Of a DNA stretch of 64,000 nt, positions 3,715-49,129 are shown piece after piece. The stretch covers positions 1,727,631-1,791,630 of the forward strand of contig BDGG01000002.1 of NCBI GenBank assembly GCA_001949185.1, written 5' to 3'. Positions within the stretch are counted from its first letter, which is position 1. Each line of letters opens with the position of its first letter. Made by a program: the position numbers and the translations under genes. The notes under the pieces are model-generated. The model had not been told where the DNA came from. It was given only the letters and a program-made list of their open reading frames with translations, and searched no databases. The stretch is from Ramazzottius varieornatus (taxonomy: Eukaryota > Animalia > Tardigrada).

Positions 3715-5784
3715 ATGGCAAAATGGGAGAAATGGACGGTGTTGGCTTGTTCCTGCCTGTTAACCTTCGCCCACAATTTCTTTTCGGAAATTACTACACC
3801 GTTGAGCCGGCGGCTGGAGGGAGATTCGACGGTGTGTAGAGTAAACAGCAGCCATCCCGATCACTGCTTGGACCTCTCAAGTACCGAATATAACGGCCTG
3901 ACCACCGCCTTCTTCTTCGCCACAGCTGTCACTTGCTTCTTCGCCGACTTGGCCCTAAAACAGTACGGGCAAAAATGGCTGTTGTGGTCGGCCGGAGCCC
4001 TTTCCGTGATCGGCGTGTAAGTAAAAGTGTAGTCAACTCGAGCAACATAGTCGGCAAACGAAATGTACAAGATCGTTGCATCCAATGGCGCACGCTTAAA
4101 TTCGAAAGCAGCAACAAATCGCTTGACACGACGATCTTGTATTTTCCGTTTGCCCACCACCAAATCGTATTTTAAATGATTTGCGGAATTCTCTGATCGA
4201 TCAATTTTAACCGAAGGTTTCCGGTAGGTTGATTTTCGCTGGCGGAAGTTACCTAGAAAATAGCCGAGCTGCTTTCGCCGTGCTGCTGGTTGGGCGTATC
4301 ATCTACGGTTTCGGTAACGGCTTCCGGACGGCGGTTTGTGGTCATCGCGTCAACAAGATATGGAAGGACAGCACCCAGATAAAGAGCTTGTTCACACTGT
4401 CGGCCCGTCTGGGTTCCGCGTTCAGCTTCCTGCTGAACGGTGGCATACTGGACACCATTGGCATGTCCAATGCCATTTGGATCGCCTTTGGTCTTACGGC
4501 TCTGTCTGCGGTCGCCGCATGGGTCGAGGGTTACATCGACACCAAAGGGTACAGTGACGACGACGACGAAGAAATTTTCGGCCGGACGTTGTGGCAGTCC
4601 ATCAAAGATGGCCTCTGGGAGTTCAGGAAGAACGTCGATAAACTTTTCTGGTTCTTCACCATTGCATACGTCGTGATTCATTCACTGATCACCACATTCA
4701 CCGCTAACGCCCCCGCTTTACTCGAGGTATTACTGTACAGCCGTATGTGAACCAACAGAAGTCGAACCTTTATTTTAGTACTCCGATGACTAACTTACTT
4801 GGGAGCTCGGTAGGCGAACTCGACTAGATTGGTTTTTCAGGTGGCGCATGCTAACAGCAGGTATCACAGCAAATGTGCGCCACCTAGGAACAACAAAGTC
4901 AATAAGATTGTTTTCCCAACCCGCGCACAAGTTTCAGCCTGCAACACCGGATACGTGCGCTACTTGGGAAAACGGGCTGTTGAGGTTGTTTGCCAGCTCC
5001 ATTTCGTAAATTCCCGGAACAGTTATCTGAAGAATCTCTTATTTTGAGCTTCACATACTGTAAATACATATGGTTTCTTATCGTATGGCCATATACATTC
5101 TCGATTGCATGTAAGAGTTTCTTGTTGTAGGATCGAGGTGGTTATTCGGAGCGCGACGCCATCTGGGTGATCGGCATCGTCTACGACATGAGTCTTCTAA
5201 TTCCGCTGGTCGGGCTGATAGTGGACAAGACAGGTCACCGCGACTACTGGATGACACTAGGAACCATCTTTATCTTCAGCGCATTCGCTGCTTACCTGTC
5301 CTCCAACCAGATCAGCGCCATTGCCATGACGGTCTTTATCGGCCTGGGCTACGCCATCTTCAGCCCCGTTTCTTCAGCCAGTACCTCCATGGTGGCTCCT
5401 GACAAGACGGAGGGCTTCTCCGAAGGACTCCTCAACTTTTTGCGCTACTTTACTGCAGGGAGCTTCGCCTTGGTTGCCGGTCTCATTTTGGACAATGACA
5501 AGGTCGAGGGCATCACCGAAAGGATGGCGTGGTACTACCTGATTGTGGCCTTGTTGGTGGTTAGCGTCGTCGGTGCGCTGGCTTCCTTGTTGATGATCTA
5601 CGCCAACCATCGGAGCGAAAAGCAGCCCTTGACAAGAGATATTAAGGAACATAAGAAGATGAAGCCAATGGAGGACGCCGAAGCCGGCGAACGAACACCA
5701 TTGATTTCCGATGGCGATTCACCGCACAGCAGCGAGAAACGAGACAAGACGCTCTCTGGAGAAAAGAGTCCTTCGTCAGCTTGA
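3715..5784 (+). CDS. MFS transporter, MFSD1-like, paralog A (3 exons: ~3715-4016, ~4229-4726, 5131-5784)
   Basis: Multiple TM helices, YNGLTTAFF, LLVGRIIYGFGNG, ARLGSAFSF, PLVGLIVDKTGHR (MFS motif A-like); collinear with paralogs B and C. Confidence 0.85.
4839..4965. repeat. Paired N27 palindrome units (MFS A intron 2)
   Basis: AGGTGGCGCA 4839-4848 / TGCGCCACCT 4876-4885 (27 nt); second degenerate unit 4918-4965 (28 nt). Confidence 0.75.
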
Positions 5785-6595
5785 ATGATGATGAGGCACC
5801 CACCTTCATCAATGCGGGGTCCGCTTTCGACAGTTCTCTGACGCCTACAGTGTAAAAATTTCGTATCCAAATTTTGGTGTTGGTCTTACCCACTTCGCCT
5901 GTGTACAAGTAAAATACTCCTCGTTTGTAGCATTCGCCACCGAAGCTTGTTACCGCCGGTTCGAGTGGTAGTCTCTGACCTAGCCGGCAGATATCTTTTG
6001 CCGACACTGCCTACGTGTAGTAACGGGAAAGTTGCGTAACTTGAAGCGAAGAACACGCACAATGGTTCTCCGAACGCGTGGAGACGATTATGGTTGGCGA
6101 TCCCCGAAAGGCTTTTTCCCTTTCCTGTCGTCTGGCGGTCTACCTTCAGTACTACAGCGGGGTTCTCCGACGACGTGGTACGGAACCAACCTGATCACAT
6201 TTACCCTGGTCGGCTCCAGTGGTAACTTTTGGACACTCTAACTACCAGTGTGGATGTCGCATTCTACCTTGAGCGTGGTAAGTTATACAGTGAAGCCGGT
6301 GATGGTTGGGGCGGGAGTGTGGGTGGAAAAACCGAGCGGTAAGAAACACGAAAAACAAAAGTTTGCATAACTACTGATTTCCACAATATGCACATCTTCA
6401 ACAACAATTGCCTGCCTGAAGCTTGTAGGAAATTAGCAAAGCTTGCGGCTATACTGTACTTGCAGCAACCGACTGCTGGTTATTTCATCCGTTAAGACTA
6501 GTATAGTAGCTGCGTCCTATCTGCAAAATTCGCAGTTTGTCATTCTTCGCCGTAACGCTCGGTCTGGAGCAGGGTTGAACATTAGCAACCTGATC

Positions 6596-8909
6596 ATGAG
6601 TCCCGCCGCCGCCATGAAGACTGTCCCCAGCATGTCGACGACCATGCAACCCGAGCTGGCTCGGCCCATCACCCGCATCTGCGTAGTGGGCGCGGGTCTC
6701 TCCGGCCTGTGTACTCTGCGCCACTTCACGGCCGATCCAGCCTACAAGGTGACGGCATATGAGCAGCAAGACCGGGTCGGCGGCCTGTGGAACTATCCGG
6801 AAGGCTGCGAGAACTACAAGAACCTGCAAGACGATACATCGCCCTACTTTTGCCGCATGCATCGCAACCTCAAGACCAACGCCACCAAGTTCTTCATGAC
6901 GTTCGCCGGCGAACCGCGCATGACTGAGGAAATGGACATGTTCCCCACACCGCAGATGGTCGGCAAGTACCTCAAGACCTATGCAGAGTACCATGGCTTG
7001 TACAACCACATTAAGGTATGGAAGTAAGAATATATTCCTTTTTCAAAAATACATCGCATCTATCGTCGATCGTGGATGGCATGAAGCTAGCTGATGGACT
7101 GTTGTCCTTTGCAGATGAGACACGTTGTCAAAAGCATCTCTCCGCTCGGGGACAACCCACAGAATCCCAAAGGTAAGCAAGCTGAGAACGTCGCTTTTGT
7201 CTTATGCAAGCTCGGCAAACAGACTCAAGTGGCCCACGTTTTCAGCCCATGATTACTAGAAATGTTAGTGAAACAAGCTCGACCAGAACATTCTGACGCA
7301 TGCTTCCAGCCAATACCACTGAGAACGCACGCCACTTGGGGGAACAACTGGTCGAGGTGGCTGAAACGAGCTCCCGCTATGGTTCACGCTGCTCTCTGTG
7401 CGGTATGCAGCAATGAGATTCTGTAAAATTCCCAGTGAAAAAACATCAGAAAAAAATTCTAAAAAGGGACATATCGCTTTTCCAGTGGTGAAGTAGTAGT
7501 AAGAGGGGGAAAACCACTAGTTGCTGCAGGTGTTTTGGTTTTTGCGGTTGAGCAAGGCTTCAGACTTTCCGTCGGAAAAACCTGGCAGACAGAAGGGCTG
7601 CAGGCATTTCGTGTCCGAAATTGCTTTACCTAAGTGCCTCGTCTACTCAGCCGAGTAAACGAGTAAATAAGAATGTGCCAGAAAGACATCAAATAATGTG
7701 TAAATTTAGCGGTAACGACTTTCCGATGTTCACGTTCAAGACTCGTGCGGAAGACCACAACGAGCTGCACCTGTCACTCACAGCTAATTCAACCAAAACA
7801 CTGAGTCAAAAACTGAACGGTTGATTTTAACTTGGAAGAGTTACCTTTCTTCTTCGGCCATACGTATATTTCAGCTGTAATTTGGTGATTCCTTGAATTG
7901 CAGAAAAACAGCGCTGGAAGGTAGTTGTGTTCGACTTAGCCACCAGTTCGTTGAACGAGGAAATCTTTGATGTGGTCATCATTTGCAATGGGTGAGTGGA
8001 ATTACAGTCTCAACATTTCAAAGAGAAAATGGTGAATTTGGCGTGAGATGTACAGCTTGGTGCCGTTACAGACAATACCGCAAGCTTCACACTCCCGACA
8101 TTCCCACCCTGGAGAACTTCGGCGGCACGGTCCTTCACAGCGGGGAATACCGCACTCGACAACCCTTCCAGAACCAGAACGTCCTTCTCATCGGTTCGGG
8201 CCAATCAGCCAATGACCTGACCTGCGATCTACGCGTGGTGGTCAACAAGATGCTGGTGGTTCGTCGCCGACAGACCGACACATTCGACGACACGGCCCGC
8301 TTCCCCAATATCCTCCGCATCTCCGAACCGTTGCACTTCACAACCAACGGTGTCATTCTGGATGACGGTCAAGTGATGCCATTAGACACGGTGATTTTGT
8401 GCACGGGCTACGATCTAGACTTCCCCTTTTTGACCCCGGAATGTCGTGTCAAGTTCAACCGAGGGAGGGTTTGGCCCTTGTACCACCACATGATCAACTG
8501 CGACTATCCCACGATGGCCTTCATCGGCTGTATCCTCAAAGCGATACCGGTCCTGCCGGTGGTGGAAGACCAAGTGCGCTACTATAAGGTTCTGCTGGAC
8601 GGAGGCTTCAGCTTGCCTTCCACGGAGGAAATGAAGGCAGAATGCGAGCAGGACTATCAGAGCAGGATGAAGAAGGGTATGAGCGATCACAAGGCCCATG
8701 TCATGAGACCCTTTGACCTACGCCTACTCCCCTACCTCGATCAACTGGCGAAGGAAGCCGATCTGATACCTTGGACTTTGGTCATGCGCAAGATAGCCAT
8801 AACATGTGACAATTCTAATACGGTGGAGCCCTGTGACGCCAGAAACTATCATTTTGATATCATCAACGGCGAGAACTTTACCATGAAGAGAATCCAGGAA
8901 AGCTCATAA
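6596..8909 (+). CDS. Flavin-containing monooxygenase (class B FMO)
   Basis: FAD motif ICVVGAGLSG, EQQDRVGGLW, FMO fingerprint FGGTVLHSGEY, NADPH motif IGSGQSA, VILCTGY; GT-AG introns near 7016-7114, 7173-7903, 7993-8072. Start chosen at first in-frame ATG. Confidence 0.92.
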
Positions 8910-10890: not shown

Positions 10891-17845
<6,955 letters not shown>

Positions 17846-22000: not shown

Positions 22001-23238
22001 ACCTTAGCTTACCTCGCAAGCCAATCGGCGAAAATTCCTGCACAGTGTAGGAGAAAGTAGTTGTTCGTTACTCCAGAACCGTTTGACTCAAAGTAATAAT
22101 TTCTTCTCGAAGACTCTGAAAGCTTTGAGATTTATAGAAAAAGCTCGCCGTTGATACTGTTGACTTTAGCTCAGTAGCATCTATAACCTGGTACCAGACG
22201 GGGGGACTGGCCTCGCGATAGTTGATTATTCAGAAGCTGAAATTTTCTTTGCTTGATCATCCTGAATAACAAACAGGCCTATGAAGCGGCGAGGCAAAAT
22301 TTCTCGCTAGTCCAAGACGAAGGGAAAGGAGAACGCGGGAGTATGGCATGATTGAATTATTGTTGACTGATGGCCAGTCCTAGCCTGAATGACTATCATC
22401 AATGGCGCTTCTGCCCATAATCAACCTAAATGTTGTCCTTTTCCCCCATCCTCATTCTATACCGACTCCTTTCTCCTCAGTGCGTTCCAACAGCACAGCA
22501 ACTTGAGAAACAGGATGGCTGTTCAAACAAGCTACACACTAGCCGCGTTGATTCACCCCACAAACATTCCTCATCTTCAATCAACCGTAAGCAGTACGAG
22601 ATAATATAAAATGTCGCAACTTCATCCAACACACTTGCGTTTCTTTGAGTCATTGCAACTCCGGTCTTATTACCCTCATCCATTAGGCGTGCAATATTGG
22701 AATGGAACAAAAGTACAGATGTTACTGTTCACATCATCTCCTGGTGTCTATCGCTGCATTGACTGTACAATTCTGCATTGTTGACTTGCTTTGCAGGGCA
22801 ACATGCAGAAACGAGCAAAGAAACTGCATTTCGCTACGAGCATTTCGGAAGTTCGCCATCATGCCAAGACAGTGGCCGGAGGGTCAATGCATCTTCCCCA
22901 TCTAGACTTTCGCCACTTAGAAATTTATTCAGACAAGTGGACGGAGTGTTAGATAGGGCAAGATTCATTGACCAACGCAACCTGACCAGCTCCAAGTCCG
23001 CCAATCACAAGAGTGATCGGCAACAGGCCACCAATCCATGCAGTGAGGTAAGTGCCAGCGCCTGGCGGTGACACACAAATCGTGCCCGAAACCTCGGCGG
23101 TCCAGTCGTCTGTGCACTTTTGTTCCCTAGCAGCACACCAGTGGAAAAAAGTCGACATTGAATGACTCATCTGGAAGAAGGCTTGTGTTGTTGTTTTTTT
23201 TATAAAAATGGTAGATGCTTTTTTTCTGACGGTGAAAC

Positions 23239-26200
23239 ATGAGAAGTTTATGCGGGGAACATCTGAGGTTCATCTTGCTGTTATATCTGTGCAAAGCTCG
23301 GGAATGCGAAGTGTTGCCGCGCATTTCTCTAAACGGTATCGGTAGTTCTGCCGCTCGACAGGTGATGGAGGCCGTGCTGAGCGCCTACAAACTTGTGCGG
23401 AGTAACGTGGTAGGCAACTACACGATGGAGACACGTTTGTCCAGTCTCTTGTTCCGAGTAGTCGGCGGTCGAGATCCCGCCATTAACGTGTCGTTTGGGG
23501 CAGTTTTCGGGCAAACACCCGTCGACACCACCAACACCCTCATAACCATCCCCGTCATGGCTCAGTCCATCGTCATCATCTACAACCTTCCCAACATCAC
23601 CCTGCGTTTGGACAAGGCCCAGTTCGTCGGTATCTTCAGCCGAACCATCAAACGCTGGTCGGACCCCAAGCTGGCCACAGCCGGCGTCCAACTGCCCGAC
23701 GCTCCCATCGAAGTGTGGATCCGTGCACAAGGCTCGTCCGGACCGTTGGTCCGACGATTGATGGCCAAGTATGATAATTCGGACATGCCTGATAATCCGC
23801 GAGACTACTGGCCGCAGAGTCTCGACTATAGGACGGCAGACTCGGCTTTTGGTGAAGCGGGAGGGGTGGCGTTCTACAACAATACTATTGGTTTCGTCGG
23901 TTATTCCACCTACATGACCAGCTGTAAGGAATTGGACAGAGTTGTCCTACAGGCGGCGTGGATGCCGAATAGCGCAGGCGTTAGCATAGAACCGACACCG
24001 GGAGCGGTGAGTATCGCTCTAAGTTGCCTGTCTCGCTCCCAGTACAAGCAGGAACAGGAAGCTTGGGCCAGACGGAAAGACGGCAGACTGAAAATCCAAC
24101 CGTAGAAAACTGCCGAAAAGTACATGGGTGTGAATTACACCCTTACGTACGTACTTCAGTTCCGCTGTTTCGGAATCGTCTGGCCCAAACTTTTTACTGG
24201 CTCAAACTTCCTTTTCGTACGTGTGGTGATATTCATTGCTGTCGTTGCAGCTGAAGGATAGCATGGCTCAACTGACTTTTGACGACAATTATCAGGAGGC
24301 CATTCTGGCCCCAGATGGGGATACCGCCTACCCCTTAGGTTCCTTCCTTTACGTTGTGGTCAGGAAGGTTTCCTCGGACGCGGAGGTCCAGCTGGACTGT
24401 GAGACGCAAGCCGAGATATTACGCTTTACCTTGTGGCTGGCGACGAGTGAAACTGGACGTGCCATCGCCAGTGACAACTTCTTTGTGTCCCTGCCACCCA
24501 ACTTGCTGGCCACTGTGGTTAAGCCCGCTCTGCAGGAAATGCGCTGCGGATACGACAACTTGGGCGTAGTATGGGACCTGGTCAAAGCCGAAGTGGATGC
24601 CGAACATGCCGTCATCGAATATGGGTAAATCTTTCAAACCTAGGGGTGGAATGTTACTTGGAAGGCCGGCGAAGGAAACGCAGGAGATCGGGCTTTCAAG
24701 TGGCGCGGTTTTACGGTGGTTTTGCTTGAAAGCCTGCGTCACTTGAGCCAATCATCTTGTAGGTTTCGTTGCCTGCCTGCTTTTTCTGTTTGTCTACGCT
24801 TTGTACCAAGATATTCCGCGAAAGTTGGTGGGCTGATTTTGTGACACCGCAGGTAGGTTGGAAATTGGATTGACCGGTGCTTTGCTGATGGTGGTAGCGT
24901 TAGTCGTTTGGTTGGCTCACAAATTGTGGCTGCATATGGTGATGTTCCGACAAGCTCAGCGGCAAATCTACGTGGTACCAGGGAGGGACATTGTTATTAT
25001 TCATGCCTCGCAAGAAAAATACGAGCAGATGATGGTGGCTCGGTGCTTCATGGAAGGACGCGAGTCGCGACCCGTCTTTGTCGTTGGCGAGTATCAGGAA
25101 GACGTCGTCATGCTCCGCCGGATGGACATTGTCATTTCCCAAATCGACATGAGACTTCGCTTGTGTCTGGTACGCTTGATGAAGAAAATGCGACATCCAA
25201 ACATTGCGCGCTTTTATGGCCTGACACAAATCAGCGGATTTCAGTCCAAATGCTTCCTTATCAGCCAGTTCTGTAAGGTCCCCACCACATCATTAAAAAA
25301 TTCGACCAAGTGTAACTAACCACTATTCTGGAAGGTCCATTAGGTGATCTGAGAACCGCGTTGGATAACAAGCGAAACGAGCTAGACGCACCGATCAAAT
25401 TTGGCATGACGAAAGGCATCACCGAAGGTTTACTCTTCCTTCACTCCAAGGGGATTGTTCACGGTAACCTCCGCAGTACTTCGGTGTACTTGGAAGCCGA
25501 CTGGACCACCAAGATTTCCGACTGGGATCTGACGTCCATCGAGGTCCTCGCTGACAAGTTCCACAACCGGGAGCGTGTTGCGCGCTTCAACCTCAGCGAG
25601 CAAGAAGAAGCCATGTATCTCCCGCCTCTTTTGTGGTCAGCGCCGGAAATTCTGCGGGCCGTGGCCAAAGACCAAATTTTCCGCCCTACTAAAGAGTGTG
25701 ACGTGTACAGGTGTGCTAACAGTTTTTGCGAAGTGGAAGGCTCAGATGGCATATAATTCAAGTCGGTAACAATGGAAATGTGCGTTACTTGAGAAAACAG
25801 ATTTGGCAAGACCTGTTTCTTCGAACCGGCGCATGCTATGGCAGCTTATATCGAAGACTTGCGCCACTTGATAAAACATTGTCCACGGTTTGTTTCGTTC
25901 AGCCCCCAAATGAAATAGTATATTTTGACGTTCACATTTCAGCTTCTCCATCATATTTTTCGAGATCCTCACCCGTGATCTTCCTTACGACTACCACCTG
26001 GTTCCGCAAAGCATGACATACGACCGTTTACTAGCTATGGTCCGTCGTTCAAAGAATCCTCTTCGACCACTGGACTTCAAAGAGAAGGACCAGATCTGGC
26101 AGAATATCCCCAGGTCAGTCATCCAGATCATGAAAGCCGGCTGGTCGCCCGACCCCACTCGTCGACCGACCATCCATCACATTCGCGAGATCCTCCACGC

Positions 26201-28777
26201 TGTCAGTTCTGAGATGAAGCGCCTGGCTGATCTGACCATCGTTCACACCCGCGCACAAATCGAACAGTACAAGAGGAACATTATCAAGAACAATGAAGAA
26301 GCGCTAGAGTTGATCAAGGATTTAGAGAACACAAAGGTGGACTTCCTGACGCGGTGGGTGTACGAACTGACCTTGAGTGGGCAGGTGATCGAACCACGAT
26401 GTTATCAGGTCTTGTATGTTCTGCGCTGTGCCTTGGTCAACTACGAAGCTCTCTGTACTTCGACCCACGGAGATGCGGTGCTGTATTTTGTCGACCGGTT
26501 CTATCGGATTATTGACATCGTTCTCCCACCAGATCGAAATATCCACCGTTTACATTCTAACGGCGACGAGATTACTATCGTGGGTGCGCTCCCTGTAGGC
26601 GGTGTGGAGTACGCTTCGAAGCTGGCGATTCTCGCATTGGATGTTTTAGTCGCGGTAAATTTCAACATGAGTTCTACCCGTTTTCACCGATTCAAATTAC
26701 GAAATCACCTACTGTTACACTATTTATACTTATCTCAAAAAAAATACTGAATATGATATGTCTAAACTAGACAATTTCGCCAAGTGCCGCATTCCTCCAG
26801 ACATCGAAATCGAAACCGTGCGCCACTTGGGAAAACCATCAAGCTTGACGAAATCGTTTTCCCAAATGGTTCATCCTTTCGCCCAACGACACTTAAAGAA
26901 GTGCGCCGCTTGGAAAGACGATCCGGTCGAATTTGTTCGCTGAGCTTCCATCTTGCCTCAAACTCAGGATCTCGAGGGAAAGAAACCGTATCCCTTTGCA
27001 GGTTTGGTCGGCGGACTTGCTGGACATAGACTGGGACCGAATGGAAGTCAGGATTGCCTTGACATGTGGGCCCAGTGTGGCCGGGATTTACGGCAACAGC
27101 CATCGGTCTTTCACGGTGGTGGGTTCGGCTAGCGATGAAGCTAGCTTGGTGGAAAGTGCCGGTGCCACTTATCGCGTCCTGATGAGTGAGGCCTACTACG
27201 AAGCGCTCAAAATGTACCCGGACTTTACCGCCCAGGAAAATAACCATGATAAGAAAGTCCTTCCTGGCGATCAGAAGACTTACTGGCTACGGAAGAAGGA
27301 CAACTACAAAAACCAAAAGATTTTAGACGATATCGCTAAACTGTACCCACCACCCGACTCTCGAGGCATCGTGTCAGAAGATTTCCACATCCGGTCAGTC
27401 AGTTATGAAAAACTCATGTGATTGTAATTAGTTTAATTTTTGTTATGAATACCTTGTCTTCTTGCAATTTCAGATATTTTCTTTGAGATTCGATATAGGG
27501 AATTTCTTTGCAGGTCCCGCGATCGCCGCAAAGCTCAAGCAGCCAAAGCCTCTCTACAAGCAGGTCCCACCGGTTCATACATCGAGAAAGATCTCCGCTC
27601 AGGCTACCTCATCGAACACCGCGATCGCAGTAAAGAAACAACCAGCGTACTTTCCGTCGTCCAGACCAAAGACGCCCAGAAGAAGTCTCGGCCACGTTCC
27701 ACCACCAAGGATCTCCGCAGCAGCAGCAACAACACACCCTCCGCTATCTTCGGCAGTATGGTCGGTCCTCAAGGTTTCACCTTCTTGAAGGAGCCTTACC
27801 GCCGCGAGAAGATCCGACAACATGGCGCCTTCGTTCTCAACCAGGACCATCTAGTCGCAACTATGCTGACCGGCCAGCTCGGCCACCGACGAGTTCAGCA
27901 TGCCCAGACAGCTCTACTGACCGTCCCCAGTACGCACCACCATCATCATCACCACCACATGCATCCTCACCGCCACCACTATCCTCACTCTCTCCACGGG
28001 TATGTACCGGAGCACGACAACATCTTCCTACGAGTGCCGATTGATGTGCGCCATGTTATGTCTGGACCTTCAGTGACTTCGGCGGCTTTCATCGTATCGG
28101 ACCAACCTTCCGGAAGTCAGATCCTTCAAATTGACATTCCGACCGAAAGATCACCGCTGGGACAAACTGTGGTTGCTCGACCCACCAATAAACGAACGAG
28201 TCAGTCAGATGAACAGATTAAGCAGACTGCTTCGGAGGTTGTGGAGGAACTCGACCGAACTCGGTTGACTTCGACCGAACAAGAAACCAGCGAAGAAGAA
28301 GCCAAGAAGAAGGCCAAGCCTAGCCTGGTGGAGGAACGCATCGCCATGTACGAGCGGAACATACACAAGAACCACGGGGAAGATTCGAGTCGTGTGCGCG
28401 TCAAGCACCATCGTCACAGTAAGAAGAAGCGACGGCGTAGCAAGCCAAAGCTAGCGCAGCGTACATCCTCCACACGGTCGGACAAGCTGCGCAAAACCAG
28501 CTTGTGGGTGGCGCAGTTACCCGACACTTCGGTCTTGCTGGAGGAAGATGATCGCCAAGCCGAAGGAGCGACCGACGAAGAAAAGGAAGAAGGAAAAGAA
28601 AGCAGATCCAAGTCGCGGATTCGAAGAAGGAGTAAATGTCGAAGGAAGAGTACTCGATCGAAAAGGCGGAGAAGAACAACGGAAGGTCTGGCCGATCAGG
28701 AAGAAGGGACGCCCATATTGAGTGTGGAAGTGACGGACGACGAGAGGACAACGGAAGAAGAGGATGAATATCTATAG
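23239..28777 (+). CDS. Receptor guanylyl-cyclase-like protein: signal peptide, PstS-like (type 2 periplasmic binding) ectodomain, TM, kinase-homology domain, degenerate class III cyclase, low-complexity tail
   Basis: Ectodomain ISLNGIGSS, IPVMAQSIVIIYNLP, GIFSRTIKRWSDP, IRAQGSSG, AYPLGSFLYVVVRK, FVSLP align by eye to PstS; TM IGLTGALLMVVALVVWLA; KHD MRHPNIARFYG, HGNLRS, LLWSAPEILR, CDVYSF; cyclase-like NGDEITIVGALP, VRIALTCGPSVAGIYG, KTYWL. An intron at ~27394-27513 joins in frame to the 27758-28777 ORF. Confidence 0.82.
24698..24744. repeat. N27 palindrome unit (rGC intron)
   Basis: AAGTGGCGCG-N27-TGCGTCACTT. Confidence 0.7.
25744..25869. repeat. Paired N27 palindrome units (rGC intron)
   Basis: Units 25744-25790 (27 nt) and 25824-25869 (26 nt). 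Confidence 0.65.
26782..26911. repeat. Paired N27 palindrome units (rGC intron)
   Basis: AAGTGCCGCA-N27-TGCGCCACTT and a second unit 26864-26911 (28 nt). Confidence 0.7.
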
Positions 28778-29254: not shown

Positions 29255-30158
29255 ATGGATATCGAGAGGCTGAAAGTGGACCTGGACGGTATCAAGAGCC
29301 AGCCGGGCCCAGAGCTGGACGAGGTCAGCCCGCTGTCCGGCCTGACTATTAGACAGCGTCTCTTGATCGAACGCAGCTGGCGGGAAGTGCTGCAAATAGG
29401 CCCCGTTAAAGTCGGCATCGAACTTTTCAAACTGTAAGAGGACTGGATTTCTCCTGATCTAACTAACTGCAGCTTTTTCGTGTACTGCATTGTGCTGCAG
29501 GTTCTTTTCGAGACATCCGGAGTACGTTCAGCTTTTTCGCGCTCTGCGGGAGATACCGCCCGACAAGCTGCAGTCCAGTGCGCGATTCAAAGCTCATGGA
29601 ACCATTGTTGTACAGTAAGCCAATCACTAAACGTCCTGGTAAAGGTTGCGCATAATCGATTGAGTCTTTTTTTTTCTCAGAGCGATCAGCGGTATTATCG
29701 GTAAGTAAGCTGAATTTGCCGAAGATACTACTTGCTGTCAAGTCGCAATCTTCATTTCATGACAGCTAATCTGGAAGACGGAGAGACCATGGTAGATGTA
29801 CTGCAGAAAATCGGTCGGGATCACGTGCGTCGTCACTTGACACCTCAACATTTCGAGGTGTGCCGTTTGATTCTGGTGCACTTCTCACTAGAAGTGCCTG
29901 ACGTGAGAATCAGAACTTCTGATTGTTTAGAGTCCGACCCACAGCAAGTTTACATCTATCGTTTTACGTCCATTACAGAATTTGAAAGGCACCATCTTGC
30001 TGCTGTTGGAGACGGTGTTGGGAGAGGCATGGAGCGTTGAAGTGGCCAACAGCTGGCAGAAGGCCTTAGGCGCCGTCATGAGTACCGTTCAGAGTGCTAT
30101 GGCAGGCGAGGAAACAATCCAGGACATTAAGCAGGCCTTCGGACAAACCGACACCTAA
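29255..30158 (+). CDS. Single-domain globin (5 coding exons)
   Basis: Spliced: ...LIERSWREV...GIELFKL|FFSRHPEYVQLFRAL...FKAHGTIVVQ|AISGII|ANLEDGETMVDVLQKIGRDHVRRHLTPQHFE|NLKGTILLLLETVLGEAWSVEVANSWQKAL...TDT*. CD1 Phe, E7 His and F8 His present; introns at the ancestral B12.2 and G7.0 positions. Confidence 0.93.
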
Positions 30159-40806: not shown

Positions 40807-42614
40807 ATGGCGTTAGAGCCGGATCAAGCGCTCATTCATATGGTAACCGATGTTATTAGCGAAAGTCACTTGTCCTACCTTCGTTTTTCTGGGCTGTATC
40901 CGTCATCATGGAGAGTTGCCAGAATGGGCAAAAGCCATTCGAAACCGTCATGGGCGTTGATTTGGACGCACTGTGTTGCGGTTCTCATTTCCGCATTGGC
41001 GGTTGTAAGCCTGACGGATTATACAATGTAAGTGACTGGCTCTGTTGTACACAACAGTAAGGGTTGCGATACCTGAGTATGTAATACTTTACTGAATGTC
41101 GAGATTTGCTTGATAGGTATTTCATAAAAGACATAGCCAAGATGGAATTCTTTCGTTTTATGACCTTCACACTTCGCTTAGCCTTGACCGAACAAACGGT
41201 CAGTATCTTTGTTATTTTCATATGGAAACGACGAGAAATATCGGAGCTGCTGCTGGACATGTCGCGGATTCTGACCTGGATGGAAAAGAGGTATTCATTG
41301 CGTTTGAGGCGTATTCGAAACGTCAGCGCCCTCCTGGCTTTCATCTGGATCGGTTTTTGGCTGGGTGTTCACGTGATCGGATATATTACGTTCCAAATAC
41401 AGGAAGACCTTTCGACTTTGTTCGGTTTCACTAGGCAAGCTCGCTTTCTTTCCTTGGTTGGTGCGCAGGTTCCAGCTTACGTGGATGACATTGTGGGCGG
41501 AGCCACTCTCTTGATCAATACTCACACTGAATTGGTGGCAGCAACCTTTGTATATTCGATTATTGCTTTGATGATCACTGGATTTACACACGTGCTACAA
41601 GATCTGCAGAAGGTTGCTATTCTTCCATCCGAGAAGGAGCAAGTGATAGCTGTGCAGAAAGCATGCCGGCTGTATTTGAGATTTCGAACACTGACTGCCA
41701 AGTTTAACAAGTGTTTCGCTCTTTTGTTTGCAATATTCTTTAGTCGAGACGTCTGGTCTTTTCTGGTCGTTTACGCCGTTGCGCTAAGGATAGACAAGCT
41801 GCAAGGTCCCGAGGAAAGCCAGCACATGTTCGAGTACCGTAAGAAGAAAGATTTCGATCACGGCCGACATGATATCATTGTTGGCAGCATCGGTTTGGGC
41901 AATGCCGCGTTGAAGCATCTGCTGTGTCTTTACTGCCATATAACCGTAAGTCTAACGACAGGTTTACAAGGTATAAAAACGATGCATGATGTGACCGGTT
42001 TGTGTTTTGAGCTAAATTTATCATTCGTTCAATTTCAAATAGATCGTTATTTTAAGCCGCGCACTTTTCTAGCCAGCAACCGAGAAAACTGTGCCACTTA
42101 GAAGAACGATCACTGCGAGATTGTTTGTCGGTCTGGCAAATCTATTAATCTATCAACGACAGAAAGCTAGTCATGGTCTTGTGCCTAGGTTCGAGACATA
42201 GTTATGGTCTTGGAGGAGTTGGAAGACAAGATCGAATCGCAAGATGTCCAAGCAGAAGTCACGGAGATGCTGAGCAAAATTCAATCGTGCAGTGGCGCCA
42301 TCTCGGCTGGCGGCGTTCACATTACCACTGAATCTGCAATGGCTGTGCGTGATGTCACTCTTCGCAATCCGATGTTCCTAACGCTTACTTCTACTTGGTT
42401 TTGAGCGGGTGATTGCCACTGTTTGATGACACTAGCATCTTTCTTTTCATCACAGGTACTCGGTATGCTAGCGAGCTATGCTGTCATAATCTACCAGACG
42501 CGCGACGCAGCTCTTGGTGACCAAGAATACGCGAAGAAGACGGACCTACCGCAACTGGCCGAAATGATACGTGGCCTTATGCAAAATACCTCCACAAGCG
42601 ATATAAAATTTTAG
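40807..42614 (+). CDS. Gustatory-receptor-like (7TM chemoreceptor ion channel family) protein
   Basis: YLRFSGLYP near the N-terminus, several hydrophobic helices, C-terminal ISAGGVHIT..|VLGMLASYAVIIYQ matching the GR TM7 TYhhhhhQ motif; short 3' exons typical of GR genes. Confidence 0.75.
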
Positions 42615-42705: not shown

Positions 42706-42991
42706 CGAGGGGATTATGCCTGTCCCCACCTCTTTTTGGTCAAACTGTCCTGGCCGAACGAGAGAGGAGAGTCTCTTCTAGGATCCTGGAACAAACTACA
42801 GGGACTCGGAAGTGAAAGTCCATNNNNNNNNNNNNNNNNNNNNNNNNNNNNNNNNNNNNNNNNNNNNNNNNNNATGGACTTTCACTTCCGAGTCCCTGTA
42901 GTTTGTTCCAGGATCCTAGAAGAGACTCTCCTCTCTCGTTCGGCCAGGACAGTTTGACCAAAAAGAGGTGGGGACAGGCATAATCCCCTCG
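42706..42991. mobile_element. DNA transposon/MITE with >=118-bp identical TIRs and 3-bp TSD (TCA); centre is an assembly gap
   Basis: 42706-42823 is the exact reverse complement of 42874-42991; TCA flanks both ends (42703-42705, 42992-42994). Confidence 0.75.
42824..42873. other. Assembly gap (50 N)
   Basis: Run of n characters. Confidence 1.
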
Positions 42992-44437
42992 TCAGACCTT
43001 GCAAGTCTGGCCTTCGTAAATTTTTTTCGATCCATCTGTCCATCTGGTCGTTCAATCCACCTTCCAGCACACTTTTCCATGCACCGGTTTCGCCTGTAGA
43101 TAGATGAACCCACTGCATCGGGCAATTTCATTTGTTCCATAATTCGAGGCAGTAAGAACAATGGCCTACCTTTTCGCATATAGGGTGAGACTTTAAAGTC
43201 CATCACCCCATAGTTTTTGTCCTGCTCTTGTCTGTTGGTCATCGGGTTGTCCTTCATAGATTCGAAGGAGCATTCGCGGCAGATAGTCTCAATCTGATCT
43301 TTAGTCAAATCCTTCTTGAGGAACTTCGCGATCTGAGTGACTTCGGTGAACGTGTCTCTCTTCAAACGCTCGAACGAACAAATGTATAAGTTTTCCTTGT
43401 TGGGGATATTCCAATAGCTCGCCAGCTGATCAAAGTAGGGGGCCATACCAGGCTGGGCGCTTTGGCAGTCCGTCGGTTAACTGTTCGACAAAGTACGGAA
43501 TTTCGTGGTTGTATTGCACGGCCTCCAAACCGCGCAGCCAGTGGTGCATCAAGACTGCCACGTCTTTCGGGTTCCTGTACATGTAAATCATCTACGACAA
43601 AGGTAATTTGCCTTTAAGAAATTGTGGACGAGTTGACAGCACTCAGCTATGCACAGGAAGATCAGCGAAAGACCGGCAAATCGAGCGCACAGATTCCTGA
43701 TTGTAAGTGGCGCACAGTTCCAGTCGGCAACGGTAACCGAATGCGCCACTTGAGCGATCATGCGTTTCGGTTGCCAGCCTGCAAAGTTGAACTGCACCTG
43801 GGCTTTCTGCCAGATGCTTTGGGGAAATCCGTCAGCAGGTAAGTGGGTGGAGTAGAGACGAGGTGAGGGCATGCCAGCCAGACGGTTGATGTTCCACAAC
43901 TCAGGCTTCGCCATTTGCGATGGAATGACCTGCTCGATGAAAGGAACAGTTTCGCGGAGAGGCTTACCCGAGTGTAGGCATTGTGGATCAGCGTTGTTCG
44001 TAATCATGAGCACGATAGCTGCCATCCATTGCGACCCTGGAAAAAAACAGAACTCCCGCAACTGCTTGATCGGCTCTCTAGAACGTACCTGATTTTGGGT
44101 ACGAAGCGGAACAGATGTCGCCCTCAAGCGCTTCGAACCGCTCAATGTCACCGCTCTTAATTGGCAGGTTCCAGGGCTGCGGTACTGCAATGCCTTTGTA
44201 CCTGAAACTAGAAAATTTTATGCAGAAATCAGAAAATCGTTAACGGTTGTAGGGCGTCAACAATGGACTAGACGACTACTTTTACCAGTAAAAGTCATCG
44301 TCGTACGGGATACTGAAACAAAACTGCTGCCTAGTTGGGGAACGTGATTCCGGCTCCGATGTCTCACTACCCTCTATTGTGTTGTGAGGATCATGGCCGT
44401 CGTTCTGACCGATAAAAGCGGAAGGAGGGGAAGTCAT
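42882..44437 (-). CDS. Cytosolic-type sulfotransferase; C-terminus altered by transposon insertion, possibly decaying
   Basis: 5'-PSB loop ASYPKSG|SQW, PRLYSTHLP, YMYRNPKDVAV, SFERLKRD, CSFESMKDN, YMRKG|ETGAWK. Confidence 0.85.
43705..43751. repeat. N27 palindrome unit (sulfotransferase intron)
   Basis: Perfect arms AAGTGGCGCA-N27-TGCGCCACTT. Confidence 0.8.
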
Positions 44438-45003: not shown

Positions 45004-46919
45004 TTAGGAAGCCAGGCTGCTGTATTTGTTGCTGGCACCAAACGAGCTCGATGCCATGTGACTTCGCTCGTCACTTTCACCGTCCTTTTCATGCGCCTTT
45101 TTCCTTCTTTCATCTTCCGTGATGTTCAGCGGTTGCTCTTTAGTTTGACGATTACCCCAGATCATACCCAACGAAGTCACCGTAGCAATCACAGCCATAA
45201 CCAGAAGAAGAATGATCAAGTACCGCCACACTTCCTTGTCGCTCGTGTCCTCCTTCGTTTTGTCCAATATGCCACCAGCTATCAATGAAAACGTACCGGC
45301 ACCGATATACCGAAGAAACTTCAGAATGGCGTCCGCCACGCCGCGCGTGTGCTCGGGCGCTACGATGGAAGTGCTCGCTGAAGAGATGGGACTGAAGATG
45401 GCGTAACCGATGCCGATTAGGACCGTCATGATGATCGAGTTGAAAGAGTCGGAGGCCAAGTAAGCCGCGAAGGCTGTTAAGATAAAAACGGTGCCTAAAG
45501 TCATCCAATAATCGCGACGACCGGTCTTGTCCACAGTGAAACCGATCAGCGGGATGAAAATACTAAGGTCATAGACCAAACTGATGATATAAAGGGCTTC
45601 CATCTCCGTGTAACTGCCTTTACCCTGCAAAATACGAAACAAGCCGGGTAAATTCATTCGTGGAAGTTGGGCCCACAAATTTAGCACGACTGTCTCCCCA
45701 AGTGGCGCACGTTTTCAGCTCTGCTGGCACAAACGGTGCACCACTTGACGAAATCATTTTAACCGATGGCGCACGCTTTCGAACAACAATATTGGGCGTC
45801 TGCGCCACTTGAAAATCAGTTTTGTCGAGTCGTTCTGATGGGCTCCTGCATATTCGGATTTCTGAACTGTGGTTTTCCGCGATAGTTTACAGTGTCGTAC
45901 CCTGAGAAGTGTAGGGGCGTTGCTGGTGAAGGTCGAGATGATGACGTGAACCAGGAAGTAAGCAACGGCGAACCACCAATACATGGATTCGACATGCTTT
46001 CTAAACTGATGGTATCCCTTTTTGGTAGAGTCCCACAGCGTACTCTCCGATCCATCCTTGTCCTCGTTGCTGTCAATCCGACCTTGAATGAGAGCCGCGA
46101 GGGCCGCAGCGATAGTGAGCGCCACGGAGATCCAGATGGCATTGCTCATGCCGATGGCGTCTAACGTGGCGCCGTTGAGCAGGTAGGCACAGGCAGACCC
46201 AAGCCTTGCCAAGAGTATATACAACCCCTTTAACAGCGTGCTGTCTTTCCACAAGCTGTTGACTCGATGGCCACAAACGGTCGAACGGAGCCCGTTACCC
46301 GCGCCGTAAAGGATTCGTCCGATTATCAGGAGGGAAAAGGCCGCTGTGGTGTCTTCCAGATAAGACCCTCCCACGAAAAAGAACCTGTGCGAAACGTCAC
46401 TTGAGGGCGTCATAATGAGGGCAGGGCAAATGAACTGAACCAGATCATTTTCGCACGGGGCGCACCTTTTCAGCGTGCGCCACCTTAGCTAGTCGGCAAT
46501 CTGGTTTGATTCGTTTGCGCAGCATCCAAATGGTTAATATCCATAAGAGATATCATGGTCGGTACATACGAGCCGATTACGGTCAACGGGGCAGCAGACC
46601 AAATCATCCATTTTTGGCCGTATTGTTTAATGGCTAGCGCAGAGTACACTGCCAAGAATCCAGTGGCGTATGTGAAAGCTGCGGACAAGCTGTTGTACTC
46701 GGTGCTGCTGAGGTCTAGGCAGTGGTCCGGTGGCTTCTCTTCCGAGGAGCTTGATGTGGTGCTGGTAGTTGCAGACGTAGAACTGCCGGAATTGCGGCAT
46801 GCAGGAGAGTCGCCTTGCAGACGACGACTCAGCGGAGTCGTGATCTCCGAAAAGAAGTTACCGGAGAAGGCACACAGGCACGAACATGCCAGCACGATCC
46901 ATTGTCGCCTATTCGCCAT
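45004..46919 (-). CDS. MFS transporter, MFSD1-like, paralog B (3 exons)
   Basis: MANRRQWIVLACSCL..EITTPLSRRLQG, DHCLDLSSTEYN, LIIGRILYGAGNG, PLIGFTVDKTGRRDYW; same exon structure as paralog A. Confidence 0.85.
45700..45810. repeat. Paired N27 palindrome units (MFS B intron 2)
   Basis: Units 45700-45746 and 45764-45810, both spacers 27 nt. Confidence 0.8.
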
Positions 46920-47307
46920 CCGTAATGATAGCTTTGTGCGGGTTTCTGAATATGAAAATGGGGAAAACCTTTCTCTAGCTTCTTAGTCTTTAACCGCAAC
47001 ACTTTCATCGGAATACCAATGTTGTGCTACCTATAGTAACATATGCTGAACTAGTGCGCGTGTACAGGCGATTGGGCTTCCGAGTAGCATCGCTTCAGGT
47101 TCTATCGCTTTGCCTCGAGGGTTACTTCAAGCTGAACATAACTCATACCCAGCTCTCGTTGTGGTTTGCATTCGCGTTGAGATCAACAGTTACTACAAGT
47201 AAATGCTTCTAGGTATGGTCACAGTACACGGGGAATACAAATACAGTAAACTCGGACAACTGACGACTGAACTCTAACAGAATAGATTCCCGAAATACAC
47301 GAACGAT

Positions 47308-49129
47308 TCAGTCAGAAAGCAGTGGCGTCGTTTCGTTATGTTTGGTTTCTTTTGCATGTTCTCTTCTTCGGTGTTCTTTTTCTGTTAGAGTCAGCGGTTT
47401 TCCCACGCTGCGATGGTTAGCCCAAGACAGACATAAGGAAGCCAGAATGGCCAGTATCGCCATGGACAGCAAGAGAAGCAACAGGTTCCTCCATACACCA
47501 TCATGGGTAATCAAGTCAACTTGCTCGTTCAAAATGGCACCGGCAATCAGAGCAAAGGTCCCCGTCCCGAAATAGCGCAGGAACTTCAGGACCGCGTTGG
47601 AGAATCCTTCGGTGTTTTGGGGAGCCACAATGGTCGTGCTCGCCGAGGATACCGGATCAAAGATGGCGTAACCGATACCCAAGGTTATGGTCATGACGAT
47701 GCTGTGGACCGTTGTGGAAGCGAGGTACGCCACGAAAGCGCTCATCACCACAACGGTGGCTAGAGTGATCCAGTTTTGCCGATATCCCGTGTGGTCAACT
47801 ACGAAGCCGACAACGGGGATGATGATACTCATGACGTACACTACGCTGATGATCGTAAGGGCTTCGATCTCCGTGTACCGTCCTCTACTCTGTCAGGGAC
47901 AACATGACCCGGTTGAAGCATAGTGAACTACCCCGCATCTTTACGATGAGCCCACAGATGGTACTTCGATCGGCAACAAACTTGCCCAGATCGTTTTTCC
48001 AAGTGGCGCGCGTTTTCAGTGTTGCTGCATGGCCTAAAGCGTGCCCGATTATGAAAGATCGTTGCTTACAGTAAATGAGGCACGAGCTCAGCCAACAAAA
48101 CTGTAAGCGTACGCCGCTTCGGAAAAGTGTCTTTCCGTGTTTGCTTGCCGAGCTAGCAAACTTTCCCTAGCTTAGTTCATGGCAATATAGAGAGATTTAC
48201 CACAAGTAAATTCGGGGCATTGGTTGTGAATGTCGAGACGATCGAGTGAATGAGGAAGTAGGGGACGGCGAACCAGCAGTAGAGTGCATCAACATTGGTG
48301 AAGAACTGATTGACTCCACGCTTCGTCGACTCCCATTTGCCCACACCCTCATGGTCCAGATCATCCTCTGTGTCAATGTAGCCTTGGAACAAAGCGGCGA
48401 AACTAGCGATAATAGTCAGTCCGACGGCAATCCATATAGCATTACTCATCCCGATCGCGTCCAACGTGACTCCGCTCAGCCAGAAACTAAAGGCGTTACC
48501 TAAGCGTCCACTCATCACGTACAGTCCCTTCATCAACGTGCTGTCCTTCCAGAGATGATTGACTCGGTGACTGCACACGGTCGTTCGAAAACCGTTACCG
48601 AAACCATAGAGCAATCTTCCTATCAGAAGCAGCGCGAAAGCGGTATCGTTGTCTTCCAAGTACGACCCGCCAACAAAAAGAAACCTGCATATAATGACAC
48701 AATAAACGTTCGTAGAATGGACGACTCTGAATAACCCAAGCGGAGCACATACCAGTATACTTACGCGCCTGTAACTGCGAGTAGTCCGGAAGACCAAATC
48801 AACCATCGCTGACCAGAGTGTTTGACAGCCAAAGCAGCAAAGACCGAGGCAATCGCGGTAGCGTATGTGAAAGTGGCGGAGAGACTGTTGTATTCGGTGC
48901 TGTCCAGGTTGAGACAGTGGTCCGGTTTCTTGTAGGCTGATGGGTCGGTGGCGTTGACTATTGCAGCGACCACAGTCGAATCCGTGTTCATATTGCTGAT
49001 AAAGGTGCACGCTAACGATTGTCCTTGTAGTCGACGACTCAGGGGACTGAGGATCTGTGAAAAGAAGTTACCGGAGAAAGCTAACAGGCATGAACAGACC
49101 AAGACAATCCATTGCTGCCTTCTCGCCAT
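47308..49129 (-). CDS. MFS transporter, MFSD1-like, paralog C (3 exons)
   Basis: MARRQQWIVLVCSCLL, DHCLNLDSTEYN, LLIGRLLYGFGNG, PVVGFVVDHTGYR; ends ETTPLLSD*. Confidence 0.85.
48001..48119. repeat. Degenerate paired N27 palindrome units (MFS C intron 2)
   Basis: Left arm AAGTGGCGCG at 48001; second unit 48073-48119 with 27-nt spacer. Confidence 0.55.

Follow-up and report, generated by a model that had tools for sequence, protein, structure and literature searches.

Receptor guanylyl cyclases of animals (GC-A/NPR1, GC-C and the nematode GCY proteins) run from a signal peptide to a class III cyclase domain and are thought to have a single kind of ectodomain, the ANF_receptor or type I binding fold. 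In bacteria, the phosphate-binding protein PstS, which has a type II fold, docks with the ABC transporter of the PstSCAB system. Here we describe a locus of the tardigrade Ramazzottius varieornatus in which the two appear to be combined, at positions 23239-28777 (+ strand) of a 64-kb window, by which we mean the whole stretch of DNA analysed (64,000 nucleotides of contig BDGG01000002.1, assembly GCA_001949185.1; window position plus 1,727,630 gives the record coordinate). Seven open exons, read from the sequence, amount to 4302 nucleotides (nt), or 1433 codons and a stop. The product would be a protein of ~1433 amino acids (aa) comprising, in order, a signal peptide, a PstS-like clamshell, one transmembrane helix, a kinase-homology domain, a coiled coil, a cyclase-homology domain and a long disordered tail; its chassis would be that of an animal receptor guanylyl cyclase, with the usual ANF-receptor ectodomain swapped for a PstS-family domain. 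We think it very likely that the PstS-like ectodomain is fused to the transmembrane, kinase-homology and cyclase-homology exons in one gene. The whole of the reading that we favour, one seven-exon gene for a type I PstS-like receptor with an altered ligand and without cyclic GMP (cGMP) synthesis of its own, is moderately probable.

Folds of the periplasmic-binding-protein kind have been recruited as eukaryotic ectodomains elsewhere, in the receptor-type adenylate cyclases of trypanosomes and in the Venus-flytrap domains of G-protein-coupled receptors (GPCRs) of class C and ionotropic glutamate receptors; those families differ from PstS, being LIVBP-like type I or, in the ionotropic glutamate receptors, LAOBP-like type II. 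The DING proteins, including the ‘human phosphate-binding protein’, belong, like the tardigrade ectodomain, to the PstS superfamily and are reported from eukaryotic samples, and 4f1u, 2q9t and 4m1v are found among its weaker fold matches. To our knowledge, however, DING proteins have no genes in eukaryotes and a bacterial origin is widely assumed for them, whereas the gene described here lies, with introns, in a 9-Mb animal scaffold. Our literature searches found no paper in which PstS-type domains are connected with receptor cyclases or tardigrades, and searches on PBP_like_2 gave nothing relevant.

The PstS-like ectodomain and its ligand site

Exon 1 (23239-24006, + strand; 256 codons from an ATG start to a GTGAGT donor) encodes a signal-peptide-like N-terminus and the first two thirds of the PstS-like domain; exon 2 (24251-24624, + strand) encodes its final third. 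All sequence searches and the fold prediction were run per exon, the exons being scored apart. Exon 1 matches the Pfam family PBP_like_2 (PF12849) with E 9.2e-12 and 45.7 bits against a cut-off of 27, and at E <= 10 matches that Pfam family alone; exon 2 matches no Pfam family, and ANF_receptor gives no signal in either exon at Pfam E <= 10. On the NCBIfam PstS profile TIGR00975, exon 1 covers positions 64-221 of 315 (E 1.2e-14) and exon 2 continues over positions 238-307 (E 1.2e-4); because the two are collinear on this profile, PstS order is kept along the whole ectodomain. The best sequence matches of exon 1 among solved structures are all PstS proteins (2z22, E 5e-7; 5wnn; 1pc3; 1ixh). An AlphaFold2 model of exon 1 alone (predicted local distance difference test, pLDDT, 75.6; predicted template-modelling score 0.71) found 45 PDB matches at E <= 0.001, all of them phosphate-binding proteins, with 7dm1 the best (E 2.7e-10, template-modelling score 0.61) and the molybdate-binding ModA first appearing at E ~0.01; this model covers part of the PstS-like domain only, and its input alignment was built from PstS relatives. 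The initial annotation, made by a model from the sequence alone, had claimed PstS motif order along the full length and a type II fold in place of the type I ANF-receptor fold, and had offered structure prediction as a check. Pfam, NCBIfam, the PDB sequence search and the fold search agree in bearing this out, and the ectodomain is thus confirmed as PstS-type, having the type II and not the ANF-receptor binding fold.

The PstS equivalog cut-offs were not reached, with 54.1 bits against 205 for TIGR00975 and 26.2 against 339 for NF008171; separate scoring of the exons lowers these values, and the summed score is still far under the cut-off. Like bacterial PstS, the tardigrade domain has the same fold and is collinear with it over both lobes, but its identity to PstS is 23-28% and, in contrast to the bacterial proteins, it has a spliceosomal intron, N-glycosylation sequons and a probable tether to a membrane receptor, where the bacterial proteins dock with an ABC transporter. 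Exon 1 carries four N-x-S/T sequons, three of which are common to its relative P0002 (described below); these sequons fit an extracellular location of the PstS-like domain. No PstCAB genes were seen among the open reading frames (ORFs) of the 64-kb window.

The ligand site has changed considerably. In E. coli PstS (1ixh) we take the phosphate ligands to be Thr10, Phe11, Ser38, Asp56, Arg135, Ser139, Gly140 and Thr141, with Asp56 presumably the key ligand, Phe11 and Gly140 presumably making contact through their backbone NH groups, and Asp137 presumably pairing with Arg135. We mapped these positions through sequence alignments, among them one to 2z22, a structure of 321 residues like the E. coli chains, for which equal numbering was assumed. 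Arg135 and Ser139 alone among the listed ligands are unchanged. Thr10 is conservatively replaced by Ser, Phe11 is replaced by Ala, Ser38 by Arg (Ser in P0002), Asp56 by Phe, Gly140 by Ser and Thr141 by Gly; the pairing residue Asp137 is replaced by Gln. Around Asp56 the MAFFT and phmmer alignments differ by six residues, and in neither is an acidic residue found there. In the alignment to 2z22, RAQGSSG lies against RADGSGT and FGAVF against FGASD, so that a site only partly kept, with its Arg retained and an Asp lost, as initially described, is what we also see. From these alignments, the pocket appears to keep an anion-binding Arg/Ser core without a full phosphate site. Because Arg and Ser are kept while Asp56, Asp137 and Thr141 are lost, we suggest an altered mode of ligand binding, in which the clamshell would close on a small anion or metabolite bound unlike phosphate in PstS.

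Splicing of the ectodomain to the receptor exons

The deposited gene calls place three products at this locus, of 288, 121 and 1021 aa, and the same split is deposited at L003 10001-15539 (equivalent to window 23239-28777). The 288-aa product is exon 1 read through into intron 1, the 121-aa product runs from an ATG within exon 2 to the TAA after its donor, and the 1021-aa product is spliced, from 24942 to 28777. Taken at face value, these calls describe separate genes: a secreted, soluble PstS-like protein and an intracellular kinase- and cyclase-homology protein starting from an ATG at 24888-24942. To compare the introns we used two ENA metagenome contigs (L001 and L002) of one relative, at 71% nucleotide identity, and a Logan sequence (L004, from SRR28173874) of a closer relative, at 93% nucleotide identity, which covers exon 2 to exon 4. 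The last of these was considered as a transcript and rejected as such, being genomic, with introns present.

The comparison shows the first junction. Intron 1 (24007-24250, + strand; GTGAGT...TTGCAG, phase 0) is 244 nt long in the window; in L001 the same codon position holds an intron of 62 nt (GT...AG), after which the conserved start of exon 2 resumes. Exons 1 and 2 are therefore spliced, since the intron differs in length (62 against 244 nt) between conserved exons on both sides and the read-through tails of exon 1 differ between the two species; the 288-aa and 121-aa products, each of which is a broken half of one binding fold, are artefacts. This contradicts the separate-gene reading at its first two products. 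The annotation pipeline of this genome divided transcript models into ORFs that do not overlap, ‘to dissociate artificial fusions’, and combined these with ab initio models (PMC5034306). A real multi-exon gene with its first introns unresolved would be broken up by a procedure of this kind.

The second junction, between exon 2 and exon 3 (24857-25272, + strand), likely follows from the reading frame, from conserved splice sites and from purifying selection on the extension that encodes the transmembrane helix. After the last PstS-homologous residue there is a sole GT, which leaves two nucleotides of a codon; the TAG acceptor at 24854-56 gives the third. The intron so defined (intron 2, 24625-24856, + strand; GTAAAT...TAG) has donor and acceptor signals identical in L004. 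Overall, exons are 95-97% and introns 81-89% identical to L004; exon 2 is 94.7% identical and intron 2 87.5%, against 95-96% in the flanking exons. Upstream, a TGA at 24834-36 closes the frame of exon 3, in which no ATG precedes the transmembrane helix. The stretch from 24857 to 24941, which encodes the helix and lies upstream of the deposited start of the 1021-aa protein, is 95.3% identical to L004 with three synonymous changes and one non-synonymous (proportion of synonymous sites changed, 0.155; of non-synonymous sites, 0.015). Because the frame is closed, has no ATG before the helix and has changed mostly synonymously, this stretch is coding and requires an upstream exon. The 1021-aa product would thus begin just past a complete, in-frame transmembrane helix which no ATG precedes and whose changes are mainly synonymous; this too counts against separate genes, as does the need of receptor cyclases for both an ectodomain and a transmembrane helix. 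Three observations speak for them nevertheless: the deposited calls themselves, the stop that follows at once if intron 2 is retained (a TAA directly follows the donor G) or if the first of its two acceptor AGs is used, and the lack of any fused protein in the protein collections searched. We regard separate genes as unlikely.

As first described, the ectodomain exons were spliced to transmembrane, kinase and cyclase exons. Our analysis bears out these exons and makes the splicing likely, in that frame, splice sites and selection on the helix-coding extension agree, set against deposited calls that split the locus; one boundary needed correction, exon 2 ending at 24624 and not 24625, with the donor GT at 24625-24626. 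Exon 3 encodes a helix of ~20 hydrophobic residues, then basic residues and the N-lobe of the kinase-homology domain. In the translations, a hydrophobic N-terminus and, where exon 3 begins, 20 hydrophobic residues with His-Lys and Arg after them indicate a single-pass type I topology.

Several points weigh against a fused receptor of this kind. Beyond the three deposited products, no long protein with exon 1 is present among ~15 billion collected proteins, and therefore no assembled transcript backs the fusion. Intron 2 ends in tandem AGs 4 nt apart (24851-52 and 24855-56), of which the second alone keeps the frame. Use of the first (CAG, 24850-52) would bring a TAG stop just after exon 2 and yield a soluble PstS-like protein, and CAG is generally a stronger acceptor than TAG. 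The signal peptide and transmembrane helix were judged by eye; pLDDT falls below 50 at residues 68-98 of the exon 1 model, the loop with the Asp56 position; and the signalling output is a matter that we infer entirely.

The tandem acceptor also suggests that both forms might be made, the two AGs (or retention of intron 2) switching between a soluble protein and a membrane receptor: the first AG adds one Gly and then a stop, whereas the second leads to the receptor. At this acceptor the window and L004 are 100% identical over ~78 nt (24799-24875, from the end of intron 2, the last ~60 nt of which are invariant, into the first part of exon 3), whereas the rest of intron 2 is 80-85% identical and the exons 95%. 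This invariant stretch hints at regulated splicing of soluble and membrane forms; at 7% overall divergence, however, it could be partly due to chance or to ordinary branch-point and acceptor constraint, and we consider such a switch improbable.

Kinase-homology and cyclase-homology domains

Exon 4 (25335-25710, + strand) encodes the core of the kinase-homology domain and matches the Pfam family PK_Tyr_Ser-Thr (E 5.4e-9, 36.2 bits against a cut-off of 23.1). It has HGN in place of HRD, as we take to be the case in GC-A and other receptor cyclases, with which the tardigrade protein also shares the order of parts from signal peptide to class III cyclase. The deposited model begins this exon after an AG at 25342-43, which we dropped because it is GG in L004; the AG common to both, at 25333-34 and 9 nt upstream of the deposited one, adds Pro-Leu-Gly in frame, and this restores the CPxGxL motif typical of kinase subdomain V. 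Exon 5 (25943-26654, + strand) encodes the kinase-homology C-lobe, a coiled-coil or signalling helix and the N-terminal half of the cyclase domain; its best matches among solved structures are GC-A (residues 745-921 of the human and rat structures, E 2.4e-5) and GC-C. Exon 6 (27002-27393, + strand), the C-terminal half of the cyclase domain, matches the Pfam family Guanylate_cyc (E 1.6e-9, 38 bits against a cut-off of 21.9) and class III cyclases in the PDB. Exon 7 (27514-28777, + strand) ends in the stop and encodes a tail of ~420 aa, His-rich and of basic/acidic low complexity, to which no Pfam family was matched; its frame is open, and it is part of the deposited 1021-aa model, the length of which fits exons 3-7 exactly.

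The active site of a class III cyclase takes its two metal-binding Asp residues from one subunit and its catalytic Asn and Arg from the other. Alignments of exon 5 show the first of these Asp residues replaced by Cys and the second kept; those of exon 6 show the catalytic Asn replaced by Asp and the catalytic Arg by Leu. Both residue sets are defective and therefore the site cannot be completed even in a heterodimer. Since the first metal-binding Asp, the catalytic Asn and the catalytic Arg are lost, the cyclase domain is probably a pseudo-cyclase, and the working guanylyl-cyclase sensor that the initial annotation envisaged is not what the residues indicate. In contrast to the known animal receptor guanylyl cyclases named above, with their ANF_receptor ectodomain, the tardigrade protein combines a PstS-type ectodomain with the loss of these three catalytic residues and with a 420-aa low-complexity tail.

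An active receptor in which the PstS-like domain senses extracellular phosphate and the cyclase answers with cGMP would agree with the receptor-cyclase architecture, with the kept Arg135 and Ser139 and the Ser at the Thr10 position, and with purifying selection on the gene. It is nevertheless very unlikely: the three cyclase substitutions leave both half-sites defective in any pairing, and the ectodomain has Phe for Asp56, Gln for Asp137, Gly for Thr141 and Arg for Ser38 (the last being Ser in the relative).

Degenerate catalytic and ligand residues might equally be expected of a decaying locus, a domain-shuffling accident or pseudogene. Against this stand the seven exons, open over all of their 4302 nt, the conserved splice sites, and omega values of 0.04-0.18 against two relatives. 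Against L001, exon 1 has an omega of 0.17 and the beginning of exon 2 one of 0.15 (with the synonymous rate, dS, saturated); against L004, exons 2, 3 and 4 have values of 0.12, 0.035 and 0.18, that of exon 4 being raised by a compensated frameshift which L004 carries there. Because omega is low across all tested exons, the gene appears to be functional and not decaying, and we judge a non-functional locus highly improbable. The frameshift in L004 exon 4 (window ~25600-25627) changes six residues immediately ahead of the conserved WSAPE motif.

The protein would derive from and work like a receptor guanylyl cyclase, minus the ANF-type ectodomain and the catalytic residues. For the one-gene receptor that we favour, we propose that ligand binding would rearrange the dimer, and that this rearrangement would pass via the transmembrane helix and coiled coil to the pseudokinase, pseudo-cyclase and tail, so that output would be by protein-protein interaction and not by the receptor's own synthesis of cGMP. 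The guanylate cyclase family is expanded in the R. varieornatus genome (PMC5034306). The receptor might serve active guanylyl cyclases of this expanded family as a partner, either regulatory or dominant-negative. A bolder proposal would make this a new class of surface receptor, formed in an animal lineage when a PstS-family anion-binding clamshell was grafted onto the receptor-cyclase chassis, in which the tandem acceptor toggles secreted and membrane forms and the dead cyclase, together with active paralogues, tunes cGMP to an external oxyanion (phosphate or a relative); taken as a whole, this is quite unlikely.

Relatives, origin and genomic setting

The ORF of exon 1 maps to BDGG01000002.1, a tardigrade scaffold of ~9.03 Mb, and the location in an animal genome that was first reported is borne out by this scaffold and by the introns. 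Guanine-plus-cytosine content is even across the window (45-51%) and animal genes flank the locus, namely a gene for an ABCC-type ABC transporter upstream (from the deposited gene calls) and genes for a globin and a nitric oxide (NO) synthase downstream; because of this, contamination is excluded as the source of the PstS-like locus.

A full HMMER pass over 1.84 billion representative proteins gave 341 matches at E <= 1e-3 but only one close relative, the metagenomic protein P0002 (67% identical over exon 1). No other animal is present among the 150 HMMER matches listed, 28 of which were looked up by source. Word searches with exons 1 and 3, in a length range that excludes full-length receptors, returned only the exon 1 ORF itself, one 67% relative and one 98% relative, and nothing came from scanning JGI metagenome contigs with the alignment of exon 1. 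The receptor is so far confined to Ramazzottius and its close relatives.

Receptors with PstS-type ectodomains have precedents among protists. According to Pfam, P0005 of the ichthyosporean Chromosphaera perkinsii and P0003 and P0004 of Entosiphon sulcatum each have three to four PBP_like_2 stretches: P0005 has four such domains with Ephrin_rec_like and a sub-threshold match to a TRP-like channel, P0003 has a similar sub-threshold channel match, and P0004 has PBP_like_2 and DUF7630 only. Arcella intermedia (P0122) and the green alga Pycnococcus also have PBP_like_2 proteins, and P0108 of Pandoravirus dulcis combines PBP_like_2 with a cyclase domain and two kinase domains. These protist and giant-virus receptors resemble the tardigrade protein in being eukaryotic surface proteins with the same Pfam family as sensor module, but none is animal, none has the receptor-cyclase order, and their similarity per domain is low, at 20-39 bits. 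In P0021 (which carries a bacterial-type JGI/IMG name), P0080 and P0145, PBP_like_2 is fused to Pkinase; these bacterial Ser/Thr kinases with a C-terminal PstS-like sensor likewise unite a kinase-type domain and PBP_like_2 in one protein, but theirs has the kinase first, of the active Pkinase type, and no cyclase domain. To the protist and giant-virus group also belongs P0068, an intron-less metagenomic protein of 1444 aa, which is predicted to be a class C GPCR with PBP_like_2 and 7tm_3, the former replacing the usual ANF_receptor Venus flytrap; it puts this fold to a second unusual use, on a receptor of eukaryotic type.

The multi-domain protist matches (E 1e-20 to 1e-16) were considered as the closest relatives and dropped after scoring per domain, by which each domain of these matches reaches ~9-33 bits, and the protist domains ~9-39 bits in all, against ~50 bits for single-domain bacterial PstS. 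A quick tree placed the tardigrade pair among bacterial PstS, whereas constrained and careful searches found better trees, with the pair next to the eukaryote-rich clade of the protist and giant-virus receptors; in the careful tree it is sister to this clade with support of 88/90, which is not decisive, on a stem of 1.97 changes per site. The approximately unbiased (AU) test rejected neither the placement with the eukaryote-rich clade (p 0.88) nor that with classical bacterial PstS (p 0.17, at a cost of 14.8 log-likelihood units). The domain could come from ancient eukaryotic stock or, by the horizontal acquisition that the initial annotation had raised as a possibility, from a donor among protists or bacteria. 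It is clear, however the domain arrived, that the gene has been resident, with its introns, in the tardigrade lineage for no less than the divergence that 71% nucleotide identity spans.

Other features of the window are noted here. A 92-nt element at 22883-22974, of unsettled strand, lies ~265 nt upstream of the start codon of the receptor and is a candidate conserved pre-miRNA: it is 91% identical to the distant relative L001 (positions 32-123), against 71% for the adjacent coding exon, and it folds as a single long hairpin (minimum free energy -35.2 kcal/mol, z -6.6) in which the substitutions either lie in the loop or leave a G-U pair where an A-U pair had been. Rfam matched no family in the window or on this hairpin. 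Downstream of the receptor gene is a small multi-exon globin gene (29255-30158, + strand; Pfam Globin, E 5e-5, on the exon at 29490-29618), followed by the convergent NO synthase gene (30424 to ~34100, - strand), with the domains NO_synthase, Flavodoxin_1, FAD_binding_1 and NAD_binding_1. The globin thus sits between the cyclase-like receptor and the NO synthase, so that three families linked to NO and cGMP adjoin, which may be a coincidence. Elsewhere, the flavin-containing monooxygenase gene RvY_03998 lies at ~6443-8909, its ORF at 7983-8906 being 100% identical to ‘hypothetical protein RvY_03998 [Ramazzottius varieornatus]’. Further ORFs, guessed from their translations alone, resemble membrane transporters (several, paralogous, on both sides of the window), a seven-transmembrane chemoreceptor and a sulfotransferase; their joint coordinates are 4229-5784 (+), 45004-49010 (-), 13237-14761 (-), 41106-42101 (+) and 42916-43446 (-).

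The public three-gene annotation hides the architecture of this locus, and surveys of domain architecture would miss a PstS-like receptor of this sort. In a family thought to have one kind of ectodomain, the sensor has here apparently been exchanged for a member of a bacterial phosphate-uptake family. If the fusion is true, it would be a natural example of the modularity of ectodomain, transmembrane helix, kinase-homology and cyclase parts, and would provide both a pseudo-cyclase with a testable function and a candidate for an animal sensor of some small anion, inorganic or organic.

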